A stretch of 64,000 nucleotides of DNA from Malacoraja senta (taxonomy: Eukaryota). Positions 5,556 to 64,000 of the stretch are shown in pieces (within the stretch, counting starts at the first letter, position 1; every line of letters starts with the position of its first letter). The position numbers and the translations under genes are program-made. The notes below the pieces were generated by a model. It worked only from the letters and a program-made list of their open reading frames with translations. It did no database searches and was not told where the DNA came from. The stretch is from NCBI GenBank assembly GCA_038087875.1, contig CM075981.1:1426001-1490000 (forward strand), written 5' to 3'.

Positions 5556-5876
5556 AACCTGTGTCTGCTCCTGTGCTCAGATATCTGTCATCAGCAAATG
5601 CCTCACGTCTCGGAGGCTCCGTCTCAGTGTCCTGTGAGTCTGTCCGTGGATCCCTTCCCATCCATTACACATGGTGTGAGAAGAACAAGTATGGGTGGTC
5701 AACGATCTTGTGGAGGAATCAACTTGATCTGAGTTGTGAACTCCTCAGAGGTCAACACCGTCGATATTACTGCACAGCCTCAAATAATCGTGGGACAAAA
5801 ACCAGTGAAATACTCAAGGTGAAAATCTTCAAAGGAGCAGGAACGTGCAGTTATGTGACAGAAATCAACAATGCAG
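5556..5876 (+). CDS. Gene 1 exon C2a (C2/I-set Ig domain); splice donor mutated
   Basis: cccacag| acceptor; 321 nt open: EPVSAPVL..VSC..YTW..LDLSC..YYC..TCSYVTEINNA. The donor position reads ATGAGT where paralogs have GTGAGT. Confidence 0.85.
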
Positions 5877-6454
5877 ATGAGTGTTATTTTCCCGTGGGAA
5901 TACTGTATCACAATTCCTCTCGTGTTCTTGGAGCAGCTGCTATTCACCTTTTGGTGATGTTCGTGGGTTGCTAGGTATTTGCAGACGGCATCATTGCAGC
6001 GACCGTGAGCTCGTGGTGTAAAATGCGAGAGATTGTTTGGGGGACTGGCAAATAATTACCTGGGAGGTGTTGAGCTTCGAAAGGAGAGAAAGATCTGCAC
6101 TATTCACAACGGGTTGAGTGCATTCCATCAAATTTCTGCCATCTGCTTTAAAAATGGTTTTCTGGCTGCCGTTTAAGATCTCATAGTCACTTTGAGACAG
6201 AGAAAGCAACCAAATGCATTCTATTTGGATCCATCATCATTTATAACCAAGGATGTACAATTTCACGATCATGGCAGGATTACAAACGTGTTAGTTTGTG
6301 TGAATCTGTGGAGGAATTCTAGTAATCTCACAAAATTAAAGTGAATCTACTTGGCCGTCGCTACATCAATTATAACTCTTTTCTCAACGTGAGTTGTGAA
6401 ATGTAGCTCCCAGTAGGCGTGGAGACCCTCAGAGGGGAAGTCCAGAAGAGAGTG

Positions 6455-6690
6455 TGAATGGTTTACATCAGCGAGGCCAAGCAAATCCCAGGCCACAGTT
6501 TAGCTGAACACTTGTGCTTGGTCTGTCATGACCCAGAATCGCGCTTGATAGACACCACATCCTCAACGTCCCCCGCTGATGCAGAGCAGCAGCAGTTTGC
6601 ACCGTCTGCAGGATGCACTGCAGCAACTCACCAAGACTCCCTAGACAGCGCCTTCCAATTCAAACAGGCTCCGTGTTCAATGCATCATTA
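6455..6690 (+). mobile_element. Penelope-like GIY-YIG remnant (paralogs about 36776-37220 and 63315-63770)
   Basis: Degenerate YIxETKxxLxxxFAEHL motif. Confidence 0.55.
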
Positions 6691-7046
6691 CATAGAAACA
6701 TAGACACATAGAAAATAGGTGCAGGAGTAGGCCATTCGGCCCTTCGAGCCTGCACCGCCATTCAATATGATCATGGCTGATCATCCAACTCAGGGCCACA
6801 TCTAACTCCCTCTTAGATATAGCCAATGAACTGGCCTCAACTACCTTCTGTGGCAGAGAATTCCAGAGATTCACCAATCTCTGTGTGAAAAATGTTTTTC
6901 TCATCTCGGTCCTAAAAGATTTCCCCTTTATCCTTATACTGTGACCCCTTGTCCTGGACTTCCCCAACATCCGGAACAATCTTCCTGCATCTAGCCTGTC
7001 CAACCCCTTAAGAATGTTGTAAGTTATATAAGATCCCCCCTCAATC
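6691..7046 (-). mobile_element. CR1 3' fragment specific to gene 1
   Basis: Reverse tail atagaaac repeats; C-terminal ORF2 peptide (ORF 6677..7132). Absent at the paralogous site near 37240. Confidence 0.85.
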
Positions 7047-7275
7047 TTCACCATTGACACCCACATTGGCTGGGAAGCACTTTGGAACGACCTGTGCAGA
7101 TGGTGAGGGACGGTGTACAGTATTTGTCTCACATCGCAATCTAGGTGGAATTCAACAGAGTTAAGAAAATGATTAGGCGGATTCCCCTGTACACATTGAT
7201 GTATACTATAATGTATATGTTTGTGAAAGGCTATTTTTGCTCTTCAATTTATGAAAGATTTTCATTCAGTTTCAG

Positions 7276-7587
7276 GTGCACTGTGGGCGGAGAGCGAAGT
7301 ACGAGGAGTTATGGGAAGAGCGATCACAATCGACTGTCACTATGCAACAGTGTACCGCTCACACATAAAGTACTGGTGCCGTGGGGCAAGTCACCAGTGT
7401 ACACATGTAGTGGAAACAAATGGGAAACATGGACCGAACGGAAGAGTGTCAATCACAGATAACCCGGCACGAGGAATATTTACTGTGACTGTGGAGGATC
7501 TTCACCCTGGAGATACAGGATGGTACAATTTTGGAATTACTACACCTGGCAAACCAAGATTTAAAGTACATCTCCAAGTATCTGAAG
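7276..7587 (+). CDS. Gene 1 exon V4 (CD300/pIgR-like V domain lacking the F-strand Cys)
   Basis: ttcag| acceptor and |gtaggt donor; 312 nt; ITIDC..KYWCRG..C..RVSITD..DTGWYNFG. Confidence 0.88.
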
Positions 7588-7789
7588 GTAGGTTTCTCAG
7601 TGAGTGACTTCGTGTCTTCACTTTGGCATCCGCACAAAACATTTGTTTGGTAGGAGTCTGTTGCACAGTTCTGGTCGCCGCTTTGTAAAACAAAAGCTCC
7701 CTTTTCCTGCTGGTAATTCCTGAAATGTAAAAGAGAATCCAAGATTGTCTGATGATTTGTCTGATTTATGGTCAGTTTTAATCACAATG

Positions 7790-8293
7790 TTATAGCAAAG
7801 ATGCTGTCACGTTGGATATGATGCAGGGAAGACTTATAAGGATGTTGCGATGACTTGAGGGCCTGATCTAAATTGAGGGGTTGAGAAGGCTAGGACTTTA
7901 TTCATGGGAGCACAGGAAGATGAGGGATGATCTTATGGCAGGTACAAAATCTTGCGAGGAATAGATCAAATAAATGCAGTTCTTTGCGCAGGGTCGTGGA
8001 ATCGAAAACCAGAGGGCAATGTGTTAAGATGAGGGGGGAATAATTTAACAAAAATCTGGGGAGTAACGTTTTTACACAAAGGTTGGCAGTTATATGGAAC
8101 TAACAGCGACGGAAGTAGTTATGGCAGGTTTTCGCAACATTTAAGAACAATTTGGACATATACATGAATAGGATTAGAGGATTAAGGGGAAAGCAAGGGC
8201 AGATGGAACTAGTGTAGATGGGGCTAGTTGGTCAGAACGGGCAAGTTAGACCGAAGGGCCTGTTTCTACGCCCAATGACTCTATGAATCTATG
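7790..8293 (+). mobile_element. Old CR1-like 3' fragment (paralog about 38360-38845)
   Basis: Degenerate ORF2 C-terminus and tgactctatg tail. Confidence 0.65.
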
Positions 8294-8414
8294 TAGATGG
8301 ATGGGTCAGATTCCAACCTGGCAACTCTGGCTAAGATACAGATATGGTGGATATTGGCGAGTGTTCTATTTTCAAATGTTCACTCAGTGTCTGACTGTTT
8401 GCCCCTTCCCACAG

Positions 8415-8735
8415 AACCCGTGTCTGTTCCTGTGCTTGGATTTCTGTCACCAGCCAATGTCTCTTGTCTCGGGAGCTCAGTGACAGTGTCCTGTGAGTCG
8501 GTCAGTGGATCCCTTCCCATTAGCTACAGCTGGTATGAAAATACCCCATCTGCGGATTCAATGATCTCAGTCAACAATGCCCTGGATCTACATTGTCAAT
8601 CCTTCAAACACCAGCACCATCAATATTATTGCACAGCCTCAAATAATAATGGATCAAAATCCAGTGACATGGTCAACGTGTCCATCTCCAGCAGTGACGT
8701 GCACTGCAGTTTCCTAGTGAAAATCAACGGCACTG
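8415..8735 (+). CDS. Gene 1 exon C2b (C2/I-set Ig domain)
   Basis: cccacag| acceptor and |gtaagt donor; 321 nt open; VSC..YSW..LDLHC..YYC..HCSFLVKINGT. Confidence 0.92.
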
Positions 8736-9489
8736 GTAAGTAGTGGAGGGAATGAGGAGGAGAAGGGGAAGTGGTGGTGGGGTGGTTCATAAGATCAGGT
8801 GATAGAAGCAGAAATAGACCATTCAATCATGGCTGATCTATCTTCCCAATTCTCCTGCCTTCTCCCCATAACCTCCGTCACCCTGAAATCCTTGCACGTT
8901 ATTTAATTAACTTATCAAGATTAATATGATGGAATTATGGCCCATTTGTCAGAATTTAGTTGTTGGGCTCCAGAAATAGATTTCCTAGTGCTGGTGTAGG
9001 CCAGCTTCCTGTATAGAATTGCCTCTTGCATTTACACAGCTTTCAACTAGGTTTGCAGTGACATCAGTCCAAGCACATTCACTTTCCCACCACCATCTCC
9101 ACATGATCCACACACAGATATGGTAAGGGATCAGACATTATCAGTAAATGTGGCCACAGTTAAATCCTTGACGACGGAATCCCATTTACCAGCACCTCGT
9201 CCATTGCGGCAATTCAGGTACCTCCACTTTCTAGGTTTAAAAATATTTCTTGATACCCTTGAAACATCCTGCACCTTAACTTAACCATGTGTTCTCCACA
9301 TTTACACATATCTGTCGTGCAACATTTTCCAAAAATACACTGTCTATGCAGCTCAGAATTTTTGCACAACTTCCCCTTCCTCACCTGTCCTGCATGGAAT
9401 TTTATAAAACCCCTATCCAACCCCTCCCCATAACTGCAATGTTTCATCCCAAGCAACATTTCTCTCAAGTCTCACGTGAAATTGCACCC

Positions 9490-10124
9490 TTTAGATTAGT
9501 TTATGGATACAGCGTGGAAACACGCTGTTCGAACCAATCGGTACACACCGTCCAGTATTCACCAGTACACTAGTTCCATGGAGACCATTTACAAAGCCAA
9601 TGAACTGGCAAACGTGCACGACTTTGCAANNNNNNNNNNNNNNNNNNNNNNNNNNNNNNNNNNNNNNNNNNNNNNNNNNNNNNNNNNNNNNNNNNNNNNN
9701 NNNNNNNNNNNNNNNNNNNNNNNNNNNNNNNNNNNNNNNNNNNNNNNNNNNNNNNNNNNNNNNNNNNNNNNNNNNNNNNNNNNNNNNNNNNNNNNNNNNN
9801 NNNNNNNNNNNNNNNNNNNNNNNNNNNNNNNNNNNNNNNNNNNNNNNNNNNNNNNNNNNNNNNNNNNNNNNNNNNNNNNNNNNNNNNNNNNNNNNNNNNN
9901 NNNNNNNNNNNNNNNNNNNNNNNNNNNNNNNNNNNNNNNNNNNNNNNNNNNNNNNNNNNNNNNNNNNNNNNNNNNNNNNNNNNNNNNNNNNNNNNNNNNN
10001 NNNNNNNNNNNNAGAAAACCCACACGGTCACAGTGAGGTGGTAAAAATTCCGTACATCCGTAGTCAGGATCGAACCCGGGTCTCTGGCGTTGTAAGGCAG
10101 CAACTCTACCGCTGCGCCACTGTG
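9490..10124 (-). mobile_element. tRNA-derived SINE spanning the assembly gap (paralog about 40046-40363)
   Basis: Reverse complement of the A box (tggcgcagcggt) and B box (ggttcgatcc) and an aaact-type tail. Confidence 0.8.
9630..10012. other. Assembly gap (383 N)
   Basis: Run of N. Confidence 1.
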
Positions 10125-10318
10125 TCATCTACACCTGGCGCCAGAGTTGTTACCAGCTCGCCTGTTTGTCATAACATCTCCCATTTACTCAACTCACACG
10201 GAAGAAACATTATCCTGTCTGTTAAGCCTATCAACTACTTACATAGGAAAACCATACTCCTTTGTTCAACTGCAAGTGAAAAGCAGTGAAATTGACTTGT
10301 ATTTCCTTGTTCCAAAAG

Positions 10319-10367
10319 GTCATGAATATTCTTGTGAAAATTCGATAACATCCAATTACTCTGCAAG
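10319..10367 (+). CDS. Gene 1 stalk exon (GHEYSCENSITSNYSA)
   Basis: aag| acceptor after a pyrimidine tract and |gtaaac donor; 49 nt, phase 1 to 2, which exactly complements the phase-2 TM exon; paralog 40556-40604. Confidence 0.8.
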
Positions 10368-10498
10368 GTAAACCACCCTGTTTCCAATGGAAGTTACAAT
10401 ATACTAATTGCTGGTGTTTTGGTTGGGAATGCTTTATTTGGGAGAAATTTGTGCCTGCCTTTCACTGGCATTAAATGCCGTGAGAGTATTCATCTGAA

Positions 10499-10868
10499 TG
10501 CACAGTGGCACAGCCGATAGAATCACAACCTCACAACGCCACGACCCTGGTTCATTAGGTGCTGTCTGTGCGTGGTCTGCATGTTTTGCCTTTTATTGTG
10601 TTGGTTTCATTTAAGTGCTCCAGTTTCCTCCCAGCTCCCAAAGATGTGCCAGTTGTAAATTGCCCCGTGTGTACAGGACAGCGGTTGAATCTGTGGATAG
10701 GGGATGGGGCGGGGAGGGAGGGAGGGTGTTGGACGGTAGTGGTAGTTGATGAGAAAGTGGGGGAAATAAAAATGGGATTGACAGAGGATCCGTGTGAATG
10801 TAGTTGACTGTCTGCACAGACCAGAAGGGCTAAATGGCTTGTTTCTATACTGTGTTTCTCTATGGGTC
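10499..10868 (+). mobile_element. Older tRNA-derived SINE (paralog about 40737-41105)
   Basis: Degenerate A and B boxes and the same body as the SINE at 15243. Confidence 0.65.
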
Positions 10869-10914
10869 TTTGATCCAATGAAACCAAATATCGAAGCATA
10901 ATCAAATTTTGTAC

Positions 10915-11008
10915 GTCCAGCCATGATCACATTGAATGGCGGTGCTGGCTCAAAGGGCCGAATGGCCTACCCCTGCACCTCTTGTCTATTGTCTATTGTC
11001 TATTGTTT
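10915..11008 (+). mobile_element. CR1 extreme 3' end (paralog about 41152-41245)
   Basis: cagccatgatcacattgaatggcgg hairpin region and (tctattg)n tail. Confidence 0.8.
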
Positions 11009-11467
11009 CAAGCCTGACACCAAATATAAATGTATCTCTTAACTATTCGTTAATAATATGTATATAACTTACAAACCAATTATTAGTTAACTCTTCAGAA
11101 GGGGAATTACACTGGGTTTACATCTCATTGTGTTGTGTACATGCTTGGATGATAAGAACAAGTTCTTCCATTTGCTGCTTTTCAGCGAGCGCTTCCTGCA
11201 GTATTCACCATGACTTCTCTTTCACTAACCTCATCCCATGCTGTGAGATGAATATAGTTGCCAAACCCAAGTCTTGCAGTTTAGCTTGGTTGAGACTTGC
11301 TCTGGTGTGGTGCTGATAGGTAAATGCATTATGAATTATGGGCTAAGACACCCCCCTTGATATCACTTATGGCAACACCTTGCCATTGATGGGGCACGCA
11401 CCAAAAATTCGCTGGCGCAGAATGTGAGAAAAGTCTTTAATCAGACCGAATACAGCGAACTGAGTTA

Positions 11468-11684
11468 ACTCAATCAATCAATCAATCAATCAACCGTCAT
11501 CGTCATCTTAAACATTTCATACATAAATAAAAACAATAAAAACACTCCAAAAATAATAATAATAAATAAATAAATAAATAAATAAAACAATCCAGTCCCT
11601 GATAAAAACAATACGAATAGCTAAAAAGTGCAGGTAAAAAAACAGCAACATTAAAATACAAGTAAAAACAGTCATAAATAACTG
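11468..11684 (-). repeat. AT-rich insertion with (ATCA)n and (AAAT)n microsatellites, probably a retroelement 3' end
   Basis: Interrupts a segment that is uninterrupted at 12228-12325; (TTGA)n tail on the minus strand. Confidence 0.5.
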
Positions 11685-12677
11685 ACGCTCCCTTACACAT
11701 TGAACCTTGAAAACATTGTTTTTTAAATTATCCCTGAATATTCCATCATAATACAGTCATGAAAGTGGGAACACTTTGTTATTTATCTTGTTACAATTGA
11801 AATAGGTCTGGTTTTCTATCACACTCTTGCGATAGGAAATTAGAATATTAATAAAAGGCACGCTGTTATGAGCGAACCTTTAACCGATTTTTCGAACACA
11901 CACCATCCACACACCTACCGCGTTAATCCAAGTAATATCGAGAGGGCGAGATTAAGCATTAACATTTTTAATTTATTTTATTACTTGGCCTCATCCGTTT
12001 CCATATTTATTGTCCCACCTCCCTTCCACCATTAGAATTGATCCCTTTTAATTAATCTATCCATATGGATTTTATTATAATCTTCCTTGCAGCTGCATTT
12101 TTTTTTCTTCCAGGGTATTACACTGTTCTTTGTATCTTTCACACATCCACAGTGTTCCCTTTCCCATGACTCCCAGTCTGAAGAAGGGTCTCGACCCGAA
12201 ACGTCACACATGGGGTCATGCAGCAAAGATTCGGTGGCGCAGAAAGTGAGAAAACAGCCTTGAATTCAACCGAATACACCGAACTGTCTTAACTGACGCT
12301 CCCTTACACATTGAACCTTGAAACCTCTCCCGCTGTGTTTCTCTAGCATTGCGTGTCTATCTACTCTGTAGTCACTGAATTTACTGCTCCATCTACTGAC
12401 TTATTTCTCTGTCTTCTCCGAATCCATTTAACCGTCTAATCTCTGATACCCAGTATTGTAGATATGCTCCAGCAAAGAGGTCAGTAATTGGTGATCATAG
12501 GTTGCCCCCCCCCCCCCAGTCCAACACCCGTTCTTTCTCCAAGATGATCTCCATTGGATCTGCTGCTTCGCCCCGCTCCACTTCACTAAGATTATGAAGC
12601 AAATAACAGGTAAATGTTTCAAAGATAAATCGTCACGTTTCCTCCCATTGATTCTGTATCTCTTGCCCTTTGCCCAG

Positions 12678-12768
12678 TTACATCTCATGGAATGTGGGGC
12701 GCTGGTTGTTCTTTCTCCTGCTTGTGCTCTGGAGTATCTCAACCGCGGTGTTCACAAGAAGCTCTAAG
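12678..12768 (+). CDS. Gene 1 transmembrane exon with N-terminal Arg
   Basis: gcccag| acceptor and |gtaggt donor; 91 nt, phase 2 to 0; (S)YISWNVGRWLFFLLLVLWSISTAVFTRSSK. Confidence 0.9.
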
Positions 12769-13386
12769 GTAGGTTTTATTATCATCATGTTCATAAATTA
12801 TAGGAGCACAATTGGTCCATTCAGCCCATCATACATAATCCGCCCCCAATCACGACTAATCTAGCCTTCGCTCCCGATCCATCCTCCTGCCTTCACCCCA
12901 TAACCCTTGCCATCCTTATTTATGAGGAATATGAAAATCTCCGGCTTAAAAATATCAATTGATTTGGATAGGTACAAAAATACTGGAGTAACTCAGCGGG
13001 ACAGGCAGTATCTCCGGAGTGGATTGATATGGCCTCCACAGCCTCCTATGGTAATGAAATCCATTGATTCACCACCCTCTGCCCAAAACAATCCATTCTC
13101 TTCGCCGAATGTATCCAAACGGTTTCCATTAATGCTTTCAGATATCCTGTCCATTGATATAAACAAAAGTCGTGCACGTTTTCATAACCTGAAGTTAAAC
13201 CAAATCACTATGTAGATGATATCATGTGGTTTTGTCAGGTTGTACGTGTGCTGGGTGGATTTCTGTGCGCGGTGTGGATTCGTTGGGGTCCATCTTCCAG
13301 ACAGCCATGTGTTGGGGGTGGTCGGGTCAAATAAAGCGTGGTTCCCACTGTCAGTGAGTCTGATGACTTCACATTGTCTTTTGCAG

Positions 13387-13434
13387 AGACGCGATGAATC
13401 AGAACCTCGCCACTCGACACACGAATTAGAATGA
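13387..13434 (+). CDS. Gene 1 terminal exon, short tyrosine-free cytoplasmic tail
   Basis: ttttgcag| acceptor, phase 0; RRDESEPRHSTHELE*; identical peptide in gene 2. Confidence 0.75.
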   Translation, partial: RRDESEPRHSTHELE

Positions 13435-13817
13435 AGACTCCTAGCTTGCACCAACAGTGAGGGAATTCTGCACCGCGATGAAATATTTATGCATCATCCT
13501 GCTTTGTCAACTGATACCAATTGGACGAATATATGTATCTTGCAATTCACCGAACGGTTTCATGAAAGTGACTTCAAAGCAATGTTCCAAACTTTCCAAA
13601 CCATATCTGTTTCCAAAACTCATTTACCACACTGGTCTTAATGTTTGTCACCTCTTCCAAGGTTTCTTTCATCACCTTCGAACTATTGTTTTAACCTCTG
13701 CGTGGTTTCTGCTGCTCAAAAGTCTTATACCCTGTTAAAATATATTATATGCATTCAACTTCCTGGAAAAAAATGTTTTCGCTGAGAAATGAATAATTAT
13801 GCATCAGGATGCTTCTT

Positions 13818-13864
13818 AATAAATTTTTGTTGTCAATAAATGGTTTGTCTAATTTGTTTTGTTT
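13818..13864 (+). terminator. Candidate polyadenylation region of gene 1
   Basis: AATAAA at 13818 and 13835 followed by a GT/T-rich tract. Confidence 0.5.
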
Positions 13865-14077
13865 AGACTGTAAATTTAGTGTTGAAGAACAGACTGAAAT
13901 CAGATTGCTGGAGATTTCTCCTGTTGCCAAACGTTAAAGGCGTTAAGGAATGGCAATGATTAATCTTTCAGACCATGCTATCCCATCAGAACAAAACTCC
14001 AGATGCTGGTTTAAACTGAAGATAGACATAAATTGCTGGGGTAACTCAGAGTGACAGGCGGCATCTGTGGATATATG

Positions 14078-15010
14078 AGGTAAGTTTAGGCGGACTCAGC
14101 GGCGGTATTCAACGAATTGATCGCCGATCCTGCGCTTGTTCTCGCTTCTCGGCGATCGTTTCGCTGAACAGCTCCGCTCAGTCCGCCTAAACCTACCTGA
14201 CATCCCGGTCAATAGACAATAGACAATAGACAATAGGTGCAGGAGTAGGCCATTTGGCCCTTCGAGCCAGCACCTCCATTCAATGTGATCATGGCTGATC
14301 ATCCCCAATCAGTACCCCGTTCCAGCCTTCTCCCTATATCCCCTGACTCCGCAATTTTTAGAAGCCCTATCTATCTCTCTCTTGAAAGCATCCAGAGAAC
14401 CTGCCTCCACCGCCCTCTGAGGCATAGAATTCCACAGACTCACCACTCTCTGTGAGAAAAAGTGTTTCCTCGTCTCCGTTCTAAATGGCTTACTCCTTAT
14501 TCTTAAACTATCGCTCCTGGTTCTGAACTCCCCGAATATCGGGAACACGTTTCGCTAAACAGTTTAACTCCCCCTCCCATTCCCACACTGACATTTCTAT
14601 CCTGGGCATCCTCCATTGTCAGAGTGAGTCCCAGCGCAAATAGGAGGAACAGCACCTGATATTTCGCTAGGGCAGCTTACACCCCAGCGGTGTGAACATT
14701 GACTTCTCTAACTTCAAGTAACCCTTGCTTTCCCTCTCAATCCAGCCCCCCAATTACCAGCTCTCCGATCAGTCTGACAGTCTCCGACTACATTTTACCT
14801 CTCATTGCTTTGTTGTTACCTTCTCCCAGCTAACAATGATCTATTCTACATTTTCCTTGAGCTTCACCCCCTTTGTCCCGTTTTCACTCCTTACAATTCC
14901 TAATCTAATTATTTCCACCTCCCTTGACTTCAGTCTGAATAAGGGTCTCGACCCGAAACTTCACCCATTCCTTTCATCCATAGATGCTACCTGTCCCAAT
15001 GAGATACTCC
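14078..15010 (+). mobile_element. Penelope-like fragment with an inverted 5' piece, interrupted by CR1
   Basis: RLGDRFAEHLRSV-like segment; 50-bp inverted arms at 14078-14127 and 14149-14198. Confidence 0.65.
14209..14552 (-). mobile_element. CR1 3' fragment nested in the Penelope remnant
   Basis: (caataga)n reverse tail; ORF 14309..14548 is an ORF2 C-terminus. Confidence 0.85.
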
Positions 15011-15242
15011 AGCAATGTTGTACAACAATATTTTTTTGATTAAATGATTGAAAGAAACAGCATGGATACTGACCATTTGGCCCACCGAGCCCACGTCAAC
15101 CAGACATCAACCCTTTCACACTGGTTCTATATCACCCCACGTTCGCGTCATTTGAGTACAGTAATGTTGATAAACGTTTTATTGCTGCAACGAGTTATTC
15201 ATTTTGTCCACCGTACAAAAGAGTTAATGGACTATAAATAAT

Positions 15243-15565
15243 GGCCAAGGTGGCGCAACGGTAGAGTTGCTGCCTTACAACGCTTGCAGTGCGGGAGACC
15301 CAGGTTCGATCCCGACTACGGGAACTGTGTGTACGGAGTTTGTACGCTCTACCGTGACCGCGTGATTTTTCTCCCAGATCTTCGATTTCCTCCCACACTA
15401 CAAAGACGTACAGGTTTGTAGGTTAATTGGCTTGCTATAAATGTAAATTGTCCACAGTGTGTGGGATAGCGTTATTGTGCGTGGATCGCTGGTCAGTGTG
15501 GCCTCGGTGAGCCGAAGGGCCTGTTTCCGCGCTGTATCTCCAAACTAAACTAAACTAAACTAAAT
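15243..15565 (+). mobile_element. tRNA-derived SINE, full length
   Basis: A box tggcgcaacggt, B box ggttcgatccc, CR1-like 3' part and (aaact)n tail. Confidence 0.88.
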
Positions 15566-17649
15566 TAGTGGAAAGTCTATTCTTGTGCCGAACAAAATGG
15601 TTGAGTTGCAGCTTGCAAAGCGCGGGGTGTGAAACTGCAAATACATTGTGTTGCTTTCTTCAGTCTGACTTGTGACTGTAACCCCGCCCATGAAAGAACT
15701 ATGAAGGATGTTGTTTGAATATAAGAAATGGTGACCTGCAATAACGGAGTAACCACCATAAAGTTCCGAAAGAGTCAAGGATTGCTTTGGGTAAAATGTC
15801 CCACTGACAAAGATAAATATTATCCACACAGTAAGCGGGGAGACGAGGAAATGAGACCAGAGGCTGCTTTGAACTCATAAACCCCCATGTTAGGGATATC
15901 CGAGGAGTGCTGAATAGCCAGAGGTACTTGCAGATTATGTGGTCACATTGATGCTGCCTGGCCCCTTTCAACTCGAGCTTGTTTATGGTCTAATGGGAGG
16001 AATGAACTTGAATTGGATCTTTACCCCACTGCAGGACATCCCAAAGTGCCTCATAGATAGTGAGAGGTAAACAGTCTGAGATGCGACAGATAGACATAAA
16101 ATACTGGAACAACTCAGCGGGATAGGCAGCATCACAGCAGGGAAAGAACGGGTGACATTTCGGGTCGATGCCACTATTGTGTTTAGTGATGGGTACTGGC
16201 TTGCAATGTACTTTAATCTAATATGTTCAAACAGTCATTTATTTCTTTACACTGAATTGTTCTGCAGTGCTGACACTTTGCTCGCGCTGCTGAAAAAAGG
16301 GTGTGTAGATACGTAACTCTGAACCGCATCTTGCGAGCAGCTCGCTGTAAAACTGTTTGCTGAGCAGTGTTTGCAGTAGTCATGGGTCAAAGGCAAATGT
16401 AGACAGAATTAAATTGTTTTGCTGCATCGTCCGTTCCTCTCTGCAGTGTTTTTAGGTGGGCAAGTATACAGGAAATAGCTCCCAACAAAAGATCCTTTAC
16501 TGAGGGTCGCCAACGCTCAGCTAACACCGGTGGCGGACTCATCAGTGTGTTACACCCATACTACGTGATACACAACATTGCCACAGATGTACACAACCAG
16601 AATAAACGGCACTGTTCCACTTAAAGTGACACACCAGAACGATAGACGGCAGCAGATATTAGGTTATATTATAATGCAACTAGTTGCCTGCAGAATGAAA
16701 TCGTTGCAAGCAGATGTATAAAATCAGCCAATGGAATGAACATGAACACAACTCTGATAATGTATTCGCTCTGCATTGTAAAGAAGACAAGTTAATAATT
16801 CAATTCGCCGTGCATATTCTACCTTGCTTTAACTTCACTAAGTGTATCACTTCGCCCTTGTTGAGTTACATTACCCATGTCAGTTACATTCCACATCCCG
16901 CTTTCCCAGCTGATCTCCATCCTGTGGTAATTCTAGACAAACTTCTTCACAGTCCTCCAGACCGTTAATTTTCTATTTTCAAAACGTGAATACCATGACA
17001 ATAATGTTTCAAATTTGAATTGAAGAGTTGAAGCAGAGAGGAGAGGGTCAAACTCCAATTAACCTCAGCTGATTTCAGATGAAAATCCCCTACTTCCTAA
17101 CGCCAGCTCCCTGTTTTGCCCCTTGTCAACAGTAATAAGCAAAAACAAAAGTTCCAATTATTATATTTTTGATCTGCCGGTCCACTTACAAAATCATCAA
17201 GAGGGAATGATCGGGAAGTGTACACATCTTAGACGTTTCTACAATTCTAAATCATGTCATATTTTATCCAATGTATCATTGTTTACATGAAGGGGCCCGA
17301 CCCGAAACGTCACCTAACCATTTTCTCCAGAGGTGCTGCCTGGCCCGCAGAGTTCCTTATGCATGTTTTTGTCTATCATTATTTCCTCCACTGTTCAGTG
17401 TTAACAGACTCTGACTACAGAGATAATCGCCGCTGCATCCTAACGGATACATCATACTTGACGAAGTGGTTGAAGCAGGTGCAATAACAACATGTAACGA
17501 GCACTTGGACAGGTCCACGTATGGGGAAGGTTTGGGGAGTTTCGGATTGAACGTGGGAAAATCTGACTAACTTAGATGAGCACATTGGTCTAACGCGTTG
17601 GGGAGAAGGGCCTGTTTCCGTGACGTATGACTGTGATCATCTGACCCAA

Positions 17650-17839
17650 CCATTTGTTAAATATAACCCTGATCCTTTCACACTGTAACGTGTCGAGCTG
17701 CTGCTGGCTCGCTGTGGTTCACGATCTGAAGTCCTGTTCCCTTCTTCGTCGTTGCTATTTGAGAGATGCGGTTGTATCTGAGAGCTACGAGCTGAGCGAC
17801 AGACTGACAAGTGCTGACCTCGTCACTGTGGATAAAACA
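17650..17839 (+). promoter_or_regulatory. Putative proximal promoter/5'UTR of gene 2 (paralog about 51128-51317)
   Basis: Lies immediately upstream of the leader ATG; RUNX-type TGTGGTT at 17713 and TGCGGTT at 17767; TATA-like aaatataa near 17657. Motif matches only. Confidence 0.35.
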
Positions 17840-17876
17840 ATGTGGATTCCCATTCTTCTCATCTCCTCGCTGCCGG
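17840..17876 (+). CDS. Gene 2 leader exon (signal peptide MWIPILLISSLP)
   Basis: aaacaATG start, |gtgagt phase-1 donor; joins V1 to give MWIPILLISSLPGAVWA. Confidence 0.88.
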
Positions 17877-19223
17877 GTGAGTGAAAGCCAGATCCTGATA
17901 TTCCAATGATCAATGTTATTTGGGGTCCCATGCACCCTTTTCAAAGCAGAGGTAGTTAAGTATGTGTAGACATGTAATGGGGGAGGTGCAACTCAGTGCA
18001 TTGTGGTGATGGATCTGAAATTACATTTGAATATCTAGACTGTGTTCGTACTTTAACCACTGTTGACACGGTCTAATTGCATCCTGATGATAGTTTATAG
18101 GCATAAAATAGCAAATGAATTTGGGGACGATACTCCAAGATACCTGGACCGAAGGACAGAGGTTGCAGCATCACCAGGAAGTTGATTCTACACTTTTAAA
18201 ATGTGTTTACAACTGAGGGGGGAGTCGGGATTGTGGACTCATTGTGTCAGTTCAAATATTCCCTGCATTTGTCCAACTCAACTCTGTCGCAAACCCAACA
18301 ATTCCCCGGAGTCTGAGACTGAACCACTGTCCTCGCTCTATCCACCTACCCCCAACTCTCTCTCCATCCTCTTTCCAATCCGCAACACAGTCGCGCTGAA
18401 ATGCAAGTTCAGTTTATTGTCACGTGTACCGAGGTACAGTGAAAAGCTTTTTGTTGCGTGCTAACCAGTCAGATACATGATTATAATCGATCCTCTTACA
18501 GTGCATAGATACATGAAAGGGAAATAAAGTTTAGTGTAAGGTAAAGCCAGCGAAGTCCGATCAAGGGTAGTCCGAGGGTCACCAAAGAGGTAGATAGTTC
18601 AGCACTGCTCTCTGGTTGTGGTAGGATGATTCCGATGTCTGAGTACAACTGCGAAGGAACTGTCCCCGAATCTGGCGGTGTGCGTTTTCACGCTAGTAAC
18701 GCTCTCCGGTAATGGACCCGCTTTATTGTAACTCGTCCGTCCTCTGTGTCCTCAGTCAGGGCTTTGTAAATGCAGTGGCGGCGGTGAATGTCTAAACACG
18801 GGTCCGGCCCAGTGTCGGTTGAGAGTTGAATGTTGGCAGCGCAGCCGGCGGCACCGCCAATTAAATAGCAAAGTGGGGTCTTTCTTTAGGGTGAGAGGCC
18901 GGGCACCGCCTGGGATTGTTGGAAGGCAGCTCCCGCAAAACTGACGCGCTCCCTCAGAACCGCACTGCGATCCCAGCCCAGTTTCTGCTCAGGGATCTGG
19001 AGTGGGAAGTGAACCCAAATTGCACTGACCCGCGGACAGAACATTGACACAACTGGTACAATAACAGCACTGTCTGCACTTCAGACCGGAGACATTGGTC
19101 GTGAAGCAATATGACACATTATGGAACGTTTTACGTTTTCTTTCATGTAATCTTCAAAATGTATCAATTACCATTAAACAGTTAATTTGCTCTCCATCTG
19201 AAAGTTTCTCCGCTCAGTTTCAG

Positions 19224-19538
19224 GTGCAGTGTGGGCAAAGTGGGAAGTAAAAGGAGTTGTGGGAAGAGAGATCACAATCGATTGTCACTATGCAGCAGAG
19301 TACCGCTCACACACAAAATACTGGTGCCGTGGGAGGAGTCGACCGTGTAGAGTTTTAGTGGAAACAAATGGGCAACACGGACGGAGTGGAAGAGTGTCAA
19401 TCACAGATAACCTGGCACGAGGAATATTTACTGTGACTGTGGAGGATCTTCACTCTGAAGATACAGGATGGTACAGCTGTGGAATTACAACATCAGCCGA
19501 CCATCCAATATTTAACGTTTTACTCGAAGTATCTGACG
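19224..19538 (+). CDS. Gene 2 exon V1
   Basis: ttcag| acceptor and |gtatgt donor; 315 nt; all four Cys plus KYWC and DTGWYSC. Confidence 0.93.
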
Positions 19539-19840
19539 GTATGTTTCGCAGCGAATGACTTGACGTCTCCAGCAGAAAGACAATACAGGATTACAATCGA
19601 TCCTCTTACAGTGCATAGATACATGAAAAGGAAATTACGTTTAGTGTAAGGCGAATCCAGCAAAGTCCGATCAAGGGTAGTCCGAGGGTCATCAAAGAGA
19701 TAGATAGTTCTGCACTGCTCTCTGGATGTGGTAGGATGATTCAGATGCCTGACAAGAGCTGTGAAGTAATTGTCCCCGAATCTGGCGGTGTGCGTGTTCA
19801 CGCTAGTAACGCTCTCCGGTAAGGGACCTGGAGGTGGGTG

Positions 19841-20712
19841 GTGAGTGGGCGAGCGGTGAGTGGGTGAGTGGTTGGGTGAGTGGGCAGATGCATGGCAGAT
19901 GAAGTTTAATGTGGATAAATGTGAGTTTATCCACTTTAGTAGCAAAATCAGGAAGGCAGATTATTATCTGAATGTTGTCAGGTTGGGAAAAGGGGAAGTA
20001 CAAAGAGATCTGGGGGTCCTTGTTCACCACTCACTGAAAGTAAGCATGCAGGTACAGCAGGCAGTGAAGAAAGCTAGTGGCATGTTGACCTTAATAACAA
20101 GAGGAGTTGAGTACAGGAGCAAAGAGGTCCTTCTGCAGTTGTACATGGCCCCAGTGAGACCACACCTGGATTATTGTTTCCAGTTTTGATCTCCAAATTT
20201 GAGGAAGGACCTTCTTGCTATCGAGGGAGTGCAGTGTATGTTGAGGGAGTGCAACAAGGTTAATTCCCGGGATGGCGGGACTGTCATGTGTTGATTGAAT
20301 GGTGCGGCTGCGCTTGTATACTCTGGAATTTAGAAGGATGAGATGGGATCTTATTGAAAAATATAAGATTATTAAGGGATTGGACACGCGAGAGGCAGGA
20401 AACATTTTCCCGATATTAAGAATAATGGATAGGCAATTTACAACGGACATGAGGAAAAACGTTTTCACCCAGAGAGTTGTGAATCTGTGGAATTATCTGC
20501 CTCAGAAGGCAGTGGAGGCCGATTCACTGGATGCTTTCAAAAGAGAGTTAGATAGAGCGCTTTGGGCTAGCGGAATCAAGGGGTATGGGGAAAGGCAGGA
20601 ACGGGGTACTGATTGTGGATGATCAGCCATGAACACATTGAATGGCGGTGCTGGCTCGAAGGGCTGAATGGCCTACTCCTGCACCTATTGCCTATGTATC
20701 TATGTATCTATT
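19841..20712 (+). mobile_element. CR1 3' fragment in intron 2 (paralog about 54287-55098)
   Basis: WADAWQMKFNVDKC..RPHLDYC peptide; tctatgta tail. Confidence 0.88.
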
Positions 20713-21074
20713 TATCTATGTATGTATCTACAGTTCCTTGTGTCTCCACCTCTCATATTGAAAAGCAAGACCAATCAAAAATTGAGCAAGAGAACACTAT
20801 ACCCGTTAGAGTAACTGGGCGCAGTGGTTTCCTGATGATTGTTATCGGGTGTTACATTTGTATTTGAAGTGAACCCTACTGATGTTAACGACTCACGAAT
20901 AGATTTATGTTCTGTTGAGATAAGGAAATAAAAGACAATTAAAGATTGACAAAAAAATGCTGGATTAACTCAGCGAGACAGGCTGCATCCCTGGAGAGAA
21001 GGAATGGGTAACGTTTCTGGTCTGAGCATGGGTCTCGACCCGAAACGTCAGAGCGAGAGAGTTAGATGGAGCTC

Positions 21075-21215
21075 TAAAAGATAGCGGCGCTATGGGATAT
21101 GGTGAGAAGGTAGGAACGGGGTACTGATTGTGGATGATCAGCCATGATCATAGTGAATGTCGGTGCTGGCTCGAAGGGCCGAATGGCCTACTCCTACACC
21201 TATTGTCTCTTATTT
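21075..21215 (+). mobile_element. CR1 extreme 3' end
   Basis: ggatgatcagccatgatc and ggctcgaagggccgaatggcctactcc motifs. Confidence 0.75.
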
Positions 21216-21725
21216 CTTTACCCGCTTTATTATAATCCGTCCGTCCTCTGTTCTCAGTCAGGGCTATGTAAAAGCAGTGGCGGCGGTGAATGCCTAAACA
21301 CGGGTCCGGCCCAGTGTCGGTTGAGAGATGAATGTTGGCAGCGTAGCCGGCGGCACCGCCAATGAAATAGCAAAGTGAGGTATTTCTGCAGGGTGAGAGG
21401 CCGGGCACCGCCTGGGATTGTTGAAAGGCAGCTCCTGCAACACTGCCGCGCTCCCTCAGTACCGCACTGCGATCCCAGCCCAGTTTCTGCTCAGGGATCT
21501 GGAGTAGGAAGTGAACCCTAATTGTACTGACCAGGGGACAGAACACTGACACAACAGGTACAATTACAGCACTGCCTGCACTTCACACCGGAGACATTGG
21601 CCGTGAAGCAATATGACACATCATGGAACGATTTAAGTTTTCTTGCATGTTTTCTTCAAAATGTATCTATTTCCATTAAACAGTTCATTTGTTCTCCATC
21701 TGAAAGTTTCTCCCCTCCATTTCAG

Positions 21726-22003
21726 CCGCAGTGTGGGGAGAGACGTATGTAAGTGGAGTTGTGGGAACCGCTCACACACAAAATACTGGTGCCGTGTGCA
21801 GAATCGCCAATGTACAGATATGGTGGAAACAAATGGGCAACACGGACGGAGTGGAAGAATGTCAAGCACAGATAACCCGGCACGAGGAATATTTACTTTG
21901 ACTGTGGAGGAACTTCACTCTGGAGATACAGGATGGTACAGGTGTGGAGTTACAACATCTAAAGGCCGTCCAATGTTAAACGTAGTACTCCAAGTATCTG
22001 ACG
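21726..22003 (+). pseudogene. Gene 2 exon V2, inactivated
   Basis: 278 nt versus 315 nt in gene 3: a 37-nt deletion removes the B-strand Cys and shifts the frame; donor is GCACGT versus GTACGT. Confidence 0.9.
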
Positions 22004-22745
22004 GCACGTTTCTCAGCGATTGACTTGTCGTCTCCACTGAAAAGCCTGATCTATGTTTTCTCCGGGAAGGGTCAGGGCAGCACCGATATCCCGAGGCTCC
22101 GCAGCAGTGCAGAGACCTGCGGGGAGCGGGCGGGGGTCGGGAAACCGCACTCATTTTGCTCTCACCCTGTGCGGGCTCTGCCCCACTGAGCGGCCACCCA
22201 CTGAGAAACATAGAAACATAGAAAATAGGTGCAGGAGGAGGCCATTCGGCCTTTCGAGCCAGCACCGCCATTCATTGCGATCATGGCTGATGGTCCCCTA
22301 TCAATAACCTGTGCCTGCCTTCTCCCCAAAACCCTTGATTCCTTTTTTTTTTTTAATAATTTTTTTAATAGAAGTACGGTAGATTACAGTAATGTACAAC
22401 ACGTATATATTAATACATTTTTTGTACCGCTTCACTTTTTTAAACTTTAAGAAAGAAAAAGAAAGAAGTAAGAAAAGTGAAGAAAGTGCGCAAAGGTTGT
22501 GAAGTGCAAAAGAGTGTTGGGAAAAGAAAGCCCCTTAGAAAAGAAGTTAGAGAAGGAAGTAAAGTTAGAAAATAGACCCTAGAAAAGAAAGAGAAAGAAA
22601 GAAGGAACAATCGCTCTATTATAACTCTTATAACATACTTCATAGAGAAGGAACTACCAACCAAGTCTGTTTTTGTTTTACCTCCCATTACCAGGTCCAG
22701 ATACCTTTTATTTATTTATTTGTTTTTCTAAATTACTATTGCACC

Positions 22746-40555: not shown

Positions 40556-40604
40556 GTCATGAATATTCTTGTGAAAATTCGATAACATCCAATAACTCTG
40601 CAAG
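40556..40604 (+). CDS. Gene 2 stalk exon (GHEYSCENSITSNNSA)
   Basis: aacag| acceptor and |gtaaac donor; 49 nt. Confidence 0.82.
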
Positions 40605-45754: not shown

Positions 45755-46005
45755 GTAAGTTTTATTAGCATCATGTTCATAAATTATAGGAGCAGAATTG
45801 GTCCAATCAGCCCATTATATATAATCCGCCCCCAATCACGACTATTCTAGCCTTCGCTCCCGATCCATCCTCCTGCCTTCACCCCATAACCCTTGACATC
45901 CTTATTTATAAGAAATATGAAAATCTCCGGCTTAAAAATATCAATTGATTTGGATATGTACTAAAATACTGAACTCAGCGGGACAGGCAGTATCTCTGTC
46001 CCGCT

Positions 46006-59601: not shown

Positions 59602-59916
59602 CTGCAGTGTGGGGAGAGAGGAATTTAACAGGAGTTGTGGGAAGAGCCATCACAATCGATTGTCACTATGCAGCAGAGTTCCGCTCACAGGCTAAATACT
59701 GGTGCCGTGGGCAGAGTCGCCAATGTACAGATATGGTGGAAACAAATGGGCAACACGGACGGAGTGGAAGAGTGTCAATCACCGATATACCGGCACTAAG
59801 AATATTTACTATGACTGTGGAAGATCTTCACTCTGGAGATACAGGATGGTACAGCTGTGGAATCACAGCACCTGCCGACCATTCAATGTTTAACGTATAT
59901 CTCCAAGTATCTGACG
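59602..59916 (+). CDS. Gene 3 exon V3
   Basis: 315 nt, canonical splice sites, Cys and Trp. Confidence 0.93.
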
Positions 59917-61973
59917 GTACGTTTCGCAGCGATTGACTTAATGTCTCCACTGAAAAGCCTGATCCATGTTTTCTCCGGGAAGGGTCAGGGCAGCACCGAT
60001 ATCTCGAGGCTCCGCAGCAGTGCAGAGGCCTGCGGGGAGCGGGCGAGGGTCGGGAAACCCCACTCATGTTTGCTCTCACCCAGTGCGGGCTCTGTCCCAT
60101 TGAGCGGCCACCCACTTCAAGACACTCAACACATTACCCTGCCTCTGAATTGTATGAAATATCACCCTGTCAGAGGTTTGCATTCCGACAAACTAATAAC
60201 CCGACAGATCAGTGAGAAACAAGTGTTGCTCGCCGTCTGAATACCCGGAGAATCATAAACAGGGAATCAGTCCCCAGAGCTCCACAGACTGCGTTCAGTC
60301 CCCAGGTACCTTCCCCTACAACTGCAGGAGATGCAACACCAGTCACTATATATCCCCCCCTTTACTCCATCCATGGGCCTCAACAGTCTTTTCGGGTGAG
60401 GCAGACGTTCACTTGCATCTCCTCTAACCTCATCTACTCTATCCGCTGTTCCAGGTGTGAACAAGCGGATATAGTAGATGGGAGACCAAGCGCAGACTCG
60501 GCGATCGTTTCGCTGAACAACTCCGCTCAGTCTGCCTCGGCCTACGCTACATCCCGATTGCTAAACACTTTTATTCCCCCTCCCATTCCCAAACTGAACT
60601 TTCCGTCCTGGACCTCCTCCAGTGTCAGAGTGAGGCCAAAGGCAAATTGGAAAATCAGCGCCTCATATTTCGCTTGGGCAGCTTACAACCCAGCGGTTTG
60701 AATATTGACATCTCTAACTTCAAGTAACCCTTGCTTTACTCCTTTCCATCCCGCCCCCATCCGAAACCTCCAATTAGATTCACCTGATAATATTTTACTG
60801 ATTGTATGCCTCGTTGTCACCTTCCCTTCAGCTGACAATGATTCATTCTACATTTCCCTTTAACATTGTCACCTTTGATCACTTGTTTTAACATCTTACC
60901 CTTCCATTTCTCTTCTGTCACCCAGAACATGACTGTCAGGCTGGAGAAGGGTCTCGATCCGAAACTTCACCCACTCCTTCTCTCGAGAGATGCTGCCTGC
61001 TCCGCTGAGTTCCCCCAGTATTTTGTGTCTCTCTTAAAGCGATCGTAATTAGTTTTCGCGATTAAATTACAAGGCATTGAATTGTGTTTTTGGCACGCTG
61101 GTCTTCATCAGTGAGAACATTCAGAATATAATTTGAGATAATATGCTTCAGACGTGCAGATGTTCAGTCCACACTTTGGGAATTGTGTTCAGCTTCAGTC
61201 ACTCAGCTCCAAGAAAAGTTGAGATGGACAGCGTGCAGAAAGGTTTAAGGGCGACGTTGCCTGGACAGGATGGGATTGACGCAGGGGGCGATTGGACAAA
61301 CTCAGACTCCATTCCTTAGTGTGGAAATGATTGAGAGAGGAACTTATAGAAATGTATCAATCACGAGAAGCATGTTCATTTTCCCACGATGTGTGGAATC
61401 AAAAAGTGGAGGACAGAGGTAATGGGAACTATTTAAAGAGGGAGGAATAGTAAGGTGCAATTGACCATAATGTCATGTTTTGTACAGATGAGTGGCCGAA
61501 GCTGAACACAATTCGCACAAGTTCGACCTCAACAACATATGTACAACTGAAACATAACATCCCAACATATGTTCTGAGGAACAACATTTTCCACACATTG
61601 GGTAATATGTACATGGAACCTGCTGCCAGGGGAAGTTGTTGAGGCAGTTAGAATAGCAGCATTTAAAATAAATTTTGGATATTTGCGTAGATTGGGATCA
61701 TTGCGAGTGATAAATGAGAAACGCGGACATATGGAAATGTCATAGAAAGACATGTTGGTCGGCATTAATGAGCTGTTGTGATGGGCATCTTTCGGTTCTC
61801 TATAACTCTAACCTTCTTCGGTTTCTGCGCTTCGCACACTCCCAGAGATGTAGATGAGCCGGTGAGGTATCAACCGGACGGTTCGGGCTGAGATAAAGTG
61901 CTGCTGAGATTTAGCAAGTGTTTGGTTTTTAACAATTCATACAGGTGACTGAATATTTGCTCCATTCCCACAG

Positions 61974-62294
61974 AACCCATTTCTGCTCCTGTGCTCAGTT
62001 ATCTGTCAGCAGCAAATGCCTCACGTCTTGGAGGCTCAGTGTCAGTGTCCTGTGAGTCTCTCCGTGGATCCCTTCCCATCCATTACACGTGGTTTGAGAA
62101 GAAGGAGCATCGGGTGTCAACGATCTTGAAAGGCAATCAACTGGATCTGAGTTGTGACATCCTCAGAGGTGAACACCTTCGATATTACTGCACAGCCGCA
62201 AATAATCGTGGGACAAAACCCAGTGAAATAGTCAAGGTGAAAGTCTTCAAAGGAGCAGGAACGTGCAGTTATGTGACAGAAATGAACAATGCAG
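61974..62294 (+). CDS. Gene 3 exon C2a (intact)
   Basis: cccacag| acceptor and |gtgagt donor; 321 nt open. Confidence 0.93.
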
Positions 62295-64000
62295 GTGAGT
62301 GTTCCTCTCGTGTCCCTGAACCTGCTGCTATTCACCTTGTGGTGATGTTCATGGATTTCTTGTTATTTGCAGACGGCATCATTGCAGCCACCGTGAGCTC
62401 ATGCTGTAAAATGCGAGAGTTTGTTTGGGGGACTGGCAAATAATTGCCCGTAGCTTCCACCATGGAGGTGTTGCGCAATTTCAGCAAAGGAGAGAAAGAC
62501 ATGCACTTGTCACAAAGGGTTGAGTGCACTCCATCAAATTTCTGCCTTCTGCCTTAAAAAATGCCGCTTGGCTGCCGCTTAAGGTCTCACAGTCACTTTG
62601 AGACATTGAAAGCAACCAAATGCATCCTGTTTGGATCCGCCATCATTTACAATCAAGGATGTGAGACCAAGCGGAGGCTTGGCGATCGTTTCGCCGAACA
62701 CCTCCGGTCGGTCCGCAATAACCAACCTGAACTCCCGGTGGCTCAGCACTTCAACTCCCCCTCCCATTCCGTATCTGACCTCTCTGCCCTGGGTCTCCTC
62801 CATGGCCACAGCGAGCAACGCCGTAAATTGGAGGAAATGCACCTCATATTCCGCTTGGGCAGTCTACATCCTGGTGGCCTGAACGTTGAATTCTCCCAAT
62901 TCTGCTAGCCCTGGCTGTCCCCTCCCCTTCATCAGCCATCTGGTTGTCTCCTCCCCTCCCCCAGCCCTCGGGCTCCTCCTCCGCCTTTTCCTTTTTTCCT
63001 TTCTTCTCCCCACCCCCTTTCAGTCTGAAGAAGGGTTTCGGCCCGAAACGTTACCTATTTCCTTCGCTCCATAGATGCTGCTGCACCCGCTGAGTTTCTC
63101 CAGCATTTTTGTGTACCTATGTACAATTTCATGATCATGTTCATGATTTTAACTGTTAATTTGTGTTAAACTCCAGTAATATCACTAAATTAAATTGTAA
63201 TCTACTTGGCCGTCACTCCATCAAGTATAACCCTTACTTTTGTCAAAGAGAATTTTGAAATGAACTCCCAGTAGTCGTGGAGACGTTCAGATTGGAAGTC
63301 CAGATTAGAGTGTGAATGGTTTACATCAGAGAGACCAAGCTTATACAATGCCAGCGTTTCTTAAACTATTTCAGTGCCATTCACCCTTGAGTCTTTATTA
63401 CAAGATTTAATTCACCCTCCACTAAATATTCTTATGTTTTTTGGGTTATTATCATCTTATTTTCACGTGTGCATAATTTTATATATAATTTATTTTGTCA
63501 CATGAGCAAAAAACATGAATTAACTCATTCACCCCAAAATAATTTCATTCGCCCTTGGGTAAACCATTCATCAGTTTAAGAAGCACTGGCCGAGGCTACA
63601 ATTTCGCCGAACACTTGTGTTTGGTCTGTCATGACCCAGAGTCGTACTTGATAGACACCCCGTTGATGCAGAGCAGCAGCAGTTTGCACCATCTGCACGA
63701 TGCACTGCAGCAACTCACCAAGACTCCCAAGACATTACCTTCCAATTGCAACAGGCTCCGTGTTCAATGCATCATTAGTCACCATTCACACCCACATTGG
63801 CTGGGAAGCGCTTTGGAACGATGTGCAGATGGTGAGGGACGGTGTACAGTATCTGTCTCTCATCGCAATCTAGGTGGAATTCAACAGAGTTAAGAAAATC
63901 ATTGGGCGGACTCCCCTGTATATATTGATGTATACTATAATGTATATGTTTGTGAAAGACTAATTTTGCTCTTCAATCTATGAAAGAATTTCCTTCAGTT

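Follow-up and report, generated by a model that had tools for sequence, protein, structure and literature searches.

Three tandem receptor genes and their exon chain

The stretch of DNA analysed here, called the window below, is 64 kb of the Malacoraja senta genome (contig CM075981.1 of assembly GCA_038087875.1, positions 1,426,001 to 1,490,000 of the forward strand), with a G+C content of 43.5% and CpG at 0.61 of its expected frequency. It carries a tandem array of genes for receptors with several immunoglobulin (Ig) domains, members of the MDIR (modular domain immune-type receptors) family, which was reportedly described from skate cDNAs by Cannon and colleagues in 2006. With the Ig open reading frames (ORFs) of the window itself as queries, TBLASTN found 13 Ig exons, all on the + strand. 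Each of them is phase 1-1 and has AG/GT borders, the exceptions being the donors of gene B V2 (GC) and gene A C2a (AT). Self-BLAST gave three head-to-tail units with a period of 27-30 kb, the + strand paralogs A, B, and C: 4748-18806 pairs with 34615-52283 after lineage-specific insertions of long interspersed nuclear elements (LINEs) are removed, and 19155-37462 pairs with 53601-64000. Both results agree with the initial annotation, which had placed phase 1-1 Ig exons at these positions on the + strand and had described three head-to-tail paralogs. The 37-nt leader exon and the 49-, 91-, and 48-nt 3' exons that it had proposed were also located, the leader at 17840-17876 and 51318-51354 and the 3' exons in genes A and B. 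The features are as follows.

Gene A, the 3' part of a copy from C2a to the tail (5556-13434):
5556-5876, +, C2a exon, 321 nt, of the same Ig_C17orf99/Ig_3 type as gene C C2a; donor AT, not GT
7270-7587, +, V4 exon, V-set (E 7e-13), 318 nt with the upstream acceptor or 312 nt with that of the initial annotation
8415-8735, +, C2b exon, 321 nt, intact by border check and Pfam
9630-10012, no strand, assembly gap in the C2b-stalk intron, placed by alignment to gene B
10319-10367, +, stalk exon, 49 nt, by MDIR alignment
12678-12768, +, transmembrane exon, 91 nt, with an Arg-Trp motif, by MDIR alignment
13387-13434, +, last coding exon, 48 nt including the stop; AATAAA at 13818

Gene B, the only complete copy (17840-49446):
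17840-17876, +, leader exon, 37 nt, MWIPILLISSLP
19218-19538, +, V1 exon, 321 nt with the upstream acceptor
21726-22003, +, V2 exon, defective, 278 nt
32700-33014, +, V3 exon, 315 nt, intact
35428-35747, +, C2a exon, defective, 320 nt
37461-37778, +, V4 exon; the assembly has KCRC at 37562-37567, where relatives have KYWC
38968-39288, +, C2b exon, 321 nt, intact
40556-40604, +, stalk exon, 49 nt
45664-45754, +, transmembrane exon, 91 nt
49399-49446, +, last coding exon, 48 nt; AATAAA at 49801

Gene C, the 5' part of a copy from the leader to C2a (51318-62294):
51318-51354, +, leader exon, 37 nt
53664-53984, +, V1 exon, intact
55215-55529, +, V2 exon, intact
59602-59916, +, V3 exon, intact
61974-62294, +, C2a exon, intact; the remainder of the gene lies past the window end

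The predicted gene unit consists of a leader, V1, V2, V3, C2a, V4, C2b, a short stalk exon, a transmembrane exon, and a tail exon of 15 codons. The leader exon is present in genes B and C and is followed by GTGAGT, and AATAAA signals lie about 360-385 nt after the last coding exon of genes A and B. When exons 1-5 of gene C were joined to exons 6-10 of gene B, the composite was exactly 2124 nt and encoded 707 aa. Thus the chain of this length in the initial annotation can be rebuilt exactly, but no single copy in the window carries it.

The V1 and V4 exons each carry two acceptors 6 nt apart (cag/TTTCAG/), while in V2 and V3 the upstream AG is lost. Use of the upstream acceptor adds exactly the residues VSG. 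These residues are found at the leader-V1 and C2a-V4 junctions of the cDNA-derived MDIR3 and MDIR5 and of RefSeq models (...LP-VSG-A... and ...NNA-VSG-A...), suggesting that V1 and V4 use the upstream acceptor. The product is therefore likely to be encoded by 37+321+315+315+321+318+321+49+91+48 = 2136 nt and to have 711 aa. Both acceptors keep the frame, so the exact closing of the chain cannot discriminate between them. The codon upstream of the leader is GTG (VDKTMWIP, 17828-17839 and 51306-51317) where relatives begin with MDKTMWIP..., so that translation must begin at the second Met, like that of the MDIR5 cDNA product.

Another hydrophobic ORF lies just behind the stalk exon (40625-40757 in gene B, from 10388 in gene A) and was rejected as the transmembrane exon. 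The intron before it would be only 20 nt long, its acceptor is gone in gene A and its donor in gene B, and its conservation is no better than that of the flanking intron; homologs instead terminate with the Arg-Trp exon. Reading through the C2b donor (8735-8743 and 39288-39296) would give ...NGTGK followed by a stop. A Leucoraja RefSeq model, P0154, ends in the same way, and intron retention could therefore yield a secreted form.

Domain types and relationship to MDIR proteins

In Pfam, the V exons were V-set domains above threshold, with E values of 4e-7 to 4e-14 (1e-12 to 4e-14 for V1-V3 of gene C), and the C2 exons matched Ig_3, Ig_2, or Ig_C17orf99. Among solved structures, V1 and V3 best matched the polymeric immunoglobulin receptor (pIgR), with a per-domain E of about 1e-14 to its D1 domain. 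The next matches of the V domains were CD300/CMRF35 (E 1e-16 to 1e-20), then NKp44, TREM, and TLT. In the alignment to pIgR D1 all four cysteines were matched, including KYWC...C, which bears out the earlier use of this motif as a mark of CD300, pIgR, and TREM V domains. C2a and C2b aligned over their full length with membrane-proximal Ig domains of human FCRL5 (9loc), repeat by repeat over six repeats, and shared PVS-PVL, GS-PI-Y, and YYCTA-N-G with it; FCRL4 and CD22 followed. These sequence matches to the structures of pIgR, CD300, and FCRL5 left no ambiguity. The four V domains of an intact copy are thus pIgR/CD300-type domains, with both the canonical and the extra KYWC-C disulfide of that V-set fold, and the two C2 domains are of the FCRL5 type.

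The arrangement of these domains differs from that of each related family. pIgR has five V domains, no C2 domain, and a long transcytosis tail, whereas the window genes have interleaved FCRL-type C2 domains and a tail of 20 residues. CD300 has a single V domain on a stalk and the window genes have six Ig exons each; neither pIgR nor CD300 alternates V with FCRL-type domains. FCRL proteins and classical Fc receptors consist of C2-type domains without V domains, whereas four of the six domains are V-set here, and FCRL proteins signal by ITIM/ITAM-like motifs (immunoreceptor tyrosine-based inhibitory or activation motifs) in their own tails.

An exhaustive HMMER search with V3 gave 2235 matches. 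The best were RefSeq entries for skate, ray, and shark proteins with several domains, under the names "polymeric immunoglobulin receptor-like", "Fc receptor-like protein 5", or "uncharacterized". Word-indexed searches found MDIR5, MDIR3, and MDIR2 of Rostroraja eglanteria among the relatives. All 124 matches with E < 1e-30 were chondrichthyan, and within each species they lay on one chromosome-scale contig. One RefSeq model of Rhinoraja longicauda, P0044, joins a TRIM protein (RING/B-box/SPRY) to the C2-V-C2-transmembrane part of an MDIR. The fusion is probably a mis-join, and it hints that TRIM genes adjoin the MDIR cluster in this species. A search for relatives with P0044 as the query drew in TRIM proteins because of this chimera, and MDIR5 was then used as the query.

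MDIR5 (P0190; Rostroraja (Raja) eglanteria, cDNA-derived, 501 aa) showed 78% identity to the composite, measured over 497 aa, and 81% to gene A. It has the same leader, MWIPILLISSLP, the same four membrane-proximal domains in the same order (V-C2a-V4-C2b), the same stalk and Arg-Trp membrane span, and a tail ending in ...HEL(Q/E). The window genes are collinear with the cDNA-derived MDIR3 and MDIR5 over every exon junction. They differ from MDIR5, which is V-C2-V-C2, in having two extra N-terminal V exons (V-V-V-C2-V-C2), and two of the three window copies are damaged. MDIR3 (P0182) and its counterparts in Amblyraja radiata (P0175, P0183) and Leucoraja erinacea (P0163) share a V-V-C2-V-C2 ectodomain that is 70-76% identical to the window genes, MDIR3 itself at about 70%. 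Unlike that of the window genes, the membrane span of these proteins is uncharged, and their tail is long and contains several ITIM-like tyrosines; they are the inhibitory partners.

Per-domain trees had been suggested in the initial annotation as a check, and in these trees the domains stayed with those of MDIR3 and MDIR5 and did not group with an unrelated family. There were four clades (N-terminal V, membrane-proximal V, C2a, and C2b), each containing MDIR3 and MDIR5 domains, with support of 97-100. An ectodomain assembled in this modular way from a few Ig subfamilies is the defining feature of MDIRs. V4 formed a clade with MDIR5 domain 3 and MDIR3 domain 4 (support 100/96), C2a formed one with MDIR5 domain 2 (100/99), and C2b grouped with MDIR5 domain 4. 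For each of V1, V2, and V3 the partner was a separate domain from Amblyraja or Leucoraja (support 97-99), and P0175 has separate orthologs of the window V1 and V2. Therefore, the three N-terminal V types predate these genera and did not arise by a recent private triplication. Together with the identity to MDIR5, the shared leader and tail and the matching clades uphold the MDIR-type reading, and the window genes are assigned on these grounds to the MDIR5-type members of the MDIR multigene cluster.

Among about 130 relatives with both domain types, the architectures were (V-C2)n, with n from 1 to 6 and occasionally an extra V, and most of them are represented by an ITIM form as well as an Arg-Trp form. 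The order V-V-V-C2-V-C2 was absent from these relatives, the nearest being V-V-C2-V-C2 and one V-V-V-C2. It is a small permutation, with one V exon more than the MDIR3-type V-V-C2-V-C2.

Damaged copies and turnover of the array

The copies in the window differ in their state. All five gene C exons within the window are intact. Gene A carries two lesions, the AT donor after C2a (5877-5878) and a change of the canonical second Cys of V4 to Phe (7530-7532). In gene B, a deletion of 37 nt after 21766 removes the first Cys of V2 and shifts the frame, and the donor of this exon is GC; a deletion of 1 nt after 35554 causes a frameshift with stops in C2a. The chain of gene B itself is 2098 nt with a stop at codon 178, and the gene is thus predicted to be disabled for a six-domain product. 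The terms "six-Ig" and "expanding" in the initial annotation were therefore overstated, given a copy disabled by frameshift and another with splice and Cys lesions; only the truncated gene C is intact as far as it can be read.

Reads of two runs of the species, X1 and X2, were compared with the assembly. Run searches yielded these two and, from other organisms, runs that share repeats, but no RNA run containing the locus. Both X1 and X2 are DNA-like, with 63-65% of the words of a 5.7-kb intron-containing stretch present, and their mapping gave no splice joints, only repeat-driven joins. A contig of X1 (35028-35650), which comes from another sample, spans the C2a deletion of gene B without a gap, and therefore the 1-nt deletion is real in the X1 sample. 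The same contig differs from the assembly at six sites (35115-35499), and at each of them the read base is that of genes A and C. Similarly, at 37562-37567 in V4 of gene B, reads of X1 (and X2) encode KYWC and the assembly encodes KCRC. Since the reads agree with genes A and C where the assembly differs, the assembled gene B haplotype carries extra private changes, which points to allelic drift or gene conversion.

It might be argued that all copies are used, and that damaged exons, being phase 1-1, are skipped to give shorter "modular" receptors. For gene B this product would be leader-V1-V3-V4-C2b-stalk-transmembrane-tail. Without V2 and C2a, gene B has an open frame of 1500 nt (499 aa), its other eight exons, their splice sites, and the tail are intact, and domain permutations are numerous among relatives, ranging from V-C2 to (V-C2)6. 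However, the assembled gene B has KCRC where KYWC stands throughout the family, and its six assembly-specific changes within 470 nt, at sites on which the X1 reads and both other genes agree, look like drift. Moreover, the V2 acceptor of gene B is intact, so that by default the exon would be expected to be included and to lead to a premature stop. We therefore regard such use of all copies as improbable, and read gene B as a disabled copy.

The gap at 9630-10012 in gene A is the only run of N in the window and is crossed by no reading frame. Its flanks align with gene B in the same order and direction (7824-9629 with 38373-40184, and 10013-11677 with 40250-41900). In gene B its place is taken by about 65 nt of G-rich intronic sequence (40185-40249), which was passed over as a repeat in read mapping. 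When reads were mapped at 98% identity, gene A (5400-9600) was almost uncovered in X1 and thinly covered in X2, and gene B was well covered. This suggests that the array is polymorphic in copy number or haplotype, and the gene A copy may itself be polymorphic.

The ratio of nonsynonymous to synonymous divergence (dN/dS) was 0.9-1.7 between paralogous V exons and 0.37 for C2b. V3 differed by 8.3% between genes B and C (32700-33014 and 59602-59916), with a dN/dS of about 1, and the flanking introns differed by 2-7%; the V1 exons of the two genes differ at one base. A large LINE is present in one of the two copies:

22343-28961, -, L1-like LINE of 6.6 kb in the V2-V3 intron of gene B, absent from gene C

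Its ORF2 (22749-26537) is open over 1263 aa with endonuclease and reverse transcriptase domains, and an upstream ORF (27760-28752) is open over 331 aa. Since both are open, this may be a young element. The V divergence and the lesions, together with LINE insertions found in one copy only and with haplotype differences, lead us to conclude that the array evolves by birth and death, the usual pattern of paired immune receptor clusters.

Further LINE insertions private to gene B are in its 3' introns (41893-44266 and 46006-49021, both +). One of them, truncated and 80% identical, belongs to the L1-like family of the element above, and the other is CR1-like and 94% identical to an element at 1808-4751 in the V3-C2a intron of gene A. 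Three segments (35955-36718, 6669-7091, and 62561-62908) are very high-copy repeats with a word depth of 1e5 to 1e6 in X1 and X2. The first and the last are in the C2a-V4 intron and contain an ORF without a Pfam match; they are possibly the tail of a Penelope-like element. The repeat at 6669-7091 is the tail of a CR1-like LINE by self-BLAST.

Membrane span, signalling, and meaning for the family

The 91-nt exon of the window genes encodes a membrane span starting with VGRW, and the tail of 20 residues has no tyrosine. Across 45 proteins from sharks, rays, and skates, the span, W-x-V-G/I-R-W-L/V-L/F-F-x-L-L-x-I, is strongly conserved (W 95%, V 91%, F 95%, LL 95-100%). The tails of these Arg-Trp proteins have a median length of 19 residues, and an ITIM-like motif is present in 2 of the 45. 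Since the span is so conserved and has an Arg at its outer end, we infer that it has a partner within the membrane. The FcR-gamma-coupled receptors FcalphaRI, GPVI, OSCAR, LILRA, and NKp46 have this layout, with an Arg near the outer end of their span. The window genes resemble FcalphaRI, GPVI, OSCAR, LILRA/PIR-A, and NKp46 in the position of the Arg, in the short motif-free tail, and in having ITIM-bearing paralogs, while the ectodomains of those receptors are unrelated or distantly related. It is thus plausible, by analogy, that the window receptors belong to the adaptor-coupled activating class, whose sequence marks are a basic span residue, a short motif-free tail, and ITIM paralogs. The label "activating-type" in the initial annotation is plausible for the same reasons, with the Arg-Trp span kept in 45 relatives and their short tails mostly without an ITIM-like motif, and as a statement of function it is what we infer.

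The product expected from an intact copy is a type I membrane protein of about 711 aa. On leukocytes, the Arg towards the outer side of its span would pair with an acidic residue of an ITAM-bearing adaptor of the FcR-gamma, CD3-zeta, or DAP12 type, and a ligand bound by the fast-evolving V domains would lead to an activating signal. This form would be the activating counterpart of the ITIM-tailed MDIR3-type genes with near-identical ectodomains. As a whole, the window is very probably an MDIR5-type tandem cluster, with an adaptor-coupled receptor of about 711 aa and an array evolving by birth and death; the expression, adaptor pairing, activation, and ligand are the conjectural part of this reading.

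Several points weigh against it. In the 2006 work of Cannon and colleagues, MDIR5 is reported to lack the motifs that characterize activating or inhibitory forms, and the charged span residue is reportedly ascribed to MDIR1. The depth of X1 and X2 is zero at 5823-5963 and 7233-7373, the sites of the gene A lesions. A dN/dS close to 1 can be explained by relaxed constraint no less than by diversifying selection. The Arg marks the outer border of the hydrophobic stretch, and on another reading it would be placed immediately outside. Finally, cartilaginous fish have no FcR-gamma chain according to Akula et al. 2014 (PMC4016189).

If the Arg were merely juxtamembrane and the short tail had no function, the protein might be a non-signalling surface or decoy receptor. 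The lack of a tyrosine in the tail fits this possibility, as does the reported absence of FcR-gamma from cartilaginous fish (PMC4016189). So does the lack of a characteristic signalling motif reported for MDIR5 in 2006. However, the span is among the most conserved parts of the protein in sharks, rays, and skates, which is unusual for a passive anchor, and the family shows the paired ITIM/Arg pattern. Moreover, an Arg on the external side contravenes the positive-inside rule and fits the FcR-gamma-coupled layout. We consider a decoy role rather unlikely, and prefer the adaptor-coupled activating receptor.

Another possibility is that the MDIR family is an Ig-binding system of cartilaginous fish, analogous to Fc receptors and pIgR, with the window genes as its activating Fc receptor-like arm. 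The V domains are closest to pIgR D1, an Ig-binding domain, and the C2 domains to FCRL5, an IgG binder. Reviews call Fc receptors, FCRL molecules, and pIgR "lacking" in cartilaginous fish and ask how phagocytosis and Ig transport are managed (PMC4016189, PMC13337447). On the other hand, CD300 relatives with the same V type bind lipids and not Ig, the rapid V divergence and copy turnover suit recognition of pathogen or self ligands better than that of a conserved Fc, and the short tail rules out pIgR-like transcytosis. This explanation seems very unlikely to us. There is likewise only a slim chance that intact six-domain copies (gene C or copies beyond the window) function as receptors whose pIgR-D1-like and FCRL-like domains jointly bind immunoglobulin or opsonised targets. 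The MDIR family would then be the "missing" Fc receptor system of cartilaginous fish and a living example of the arrangement that preceded the split of the pIgR-type and FCRL-type lineages of bony vertebrates. The reading we favour is still the MDIR5-type cluster with adaptor-coupled receptors.

The MDIR family itself was already known, and in related genomes its members carry the annotation "polymeric immunoglobulin receptor-like" or "Fc receptor-like 5". What is new here is an exon-level genomic picture of an MDIR5-type tandem array, with a triple V head that is a fresh domain permutation. The array is also a clear example of birth and death, with a frameshift, splice and Cys lesions, LINE insertions, and haplotype differences. 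Domains of the pIgR type and the FCRL5 type exist in cartilaginous fish, where they are fused in one family; this is a point about the family and not a discovery from the window, and the 2006 work on MDIR reportedly already hinted at it. Since MDIR genes combine pIgR/CD300-type V domains with FCRL5-type C2 domains, they are obvious candidates for Ig binding as well as for the ancestry of the two receptor lineages.

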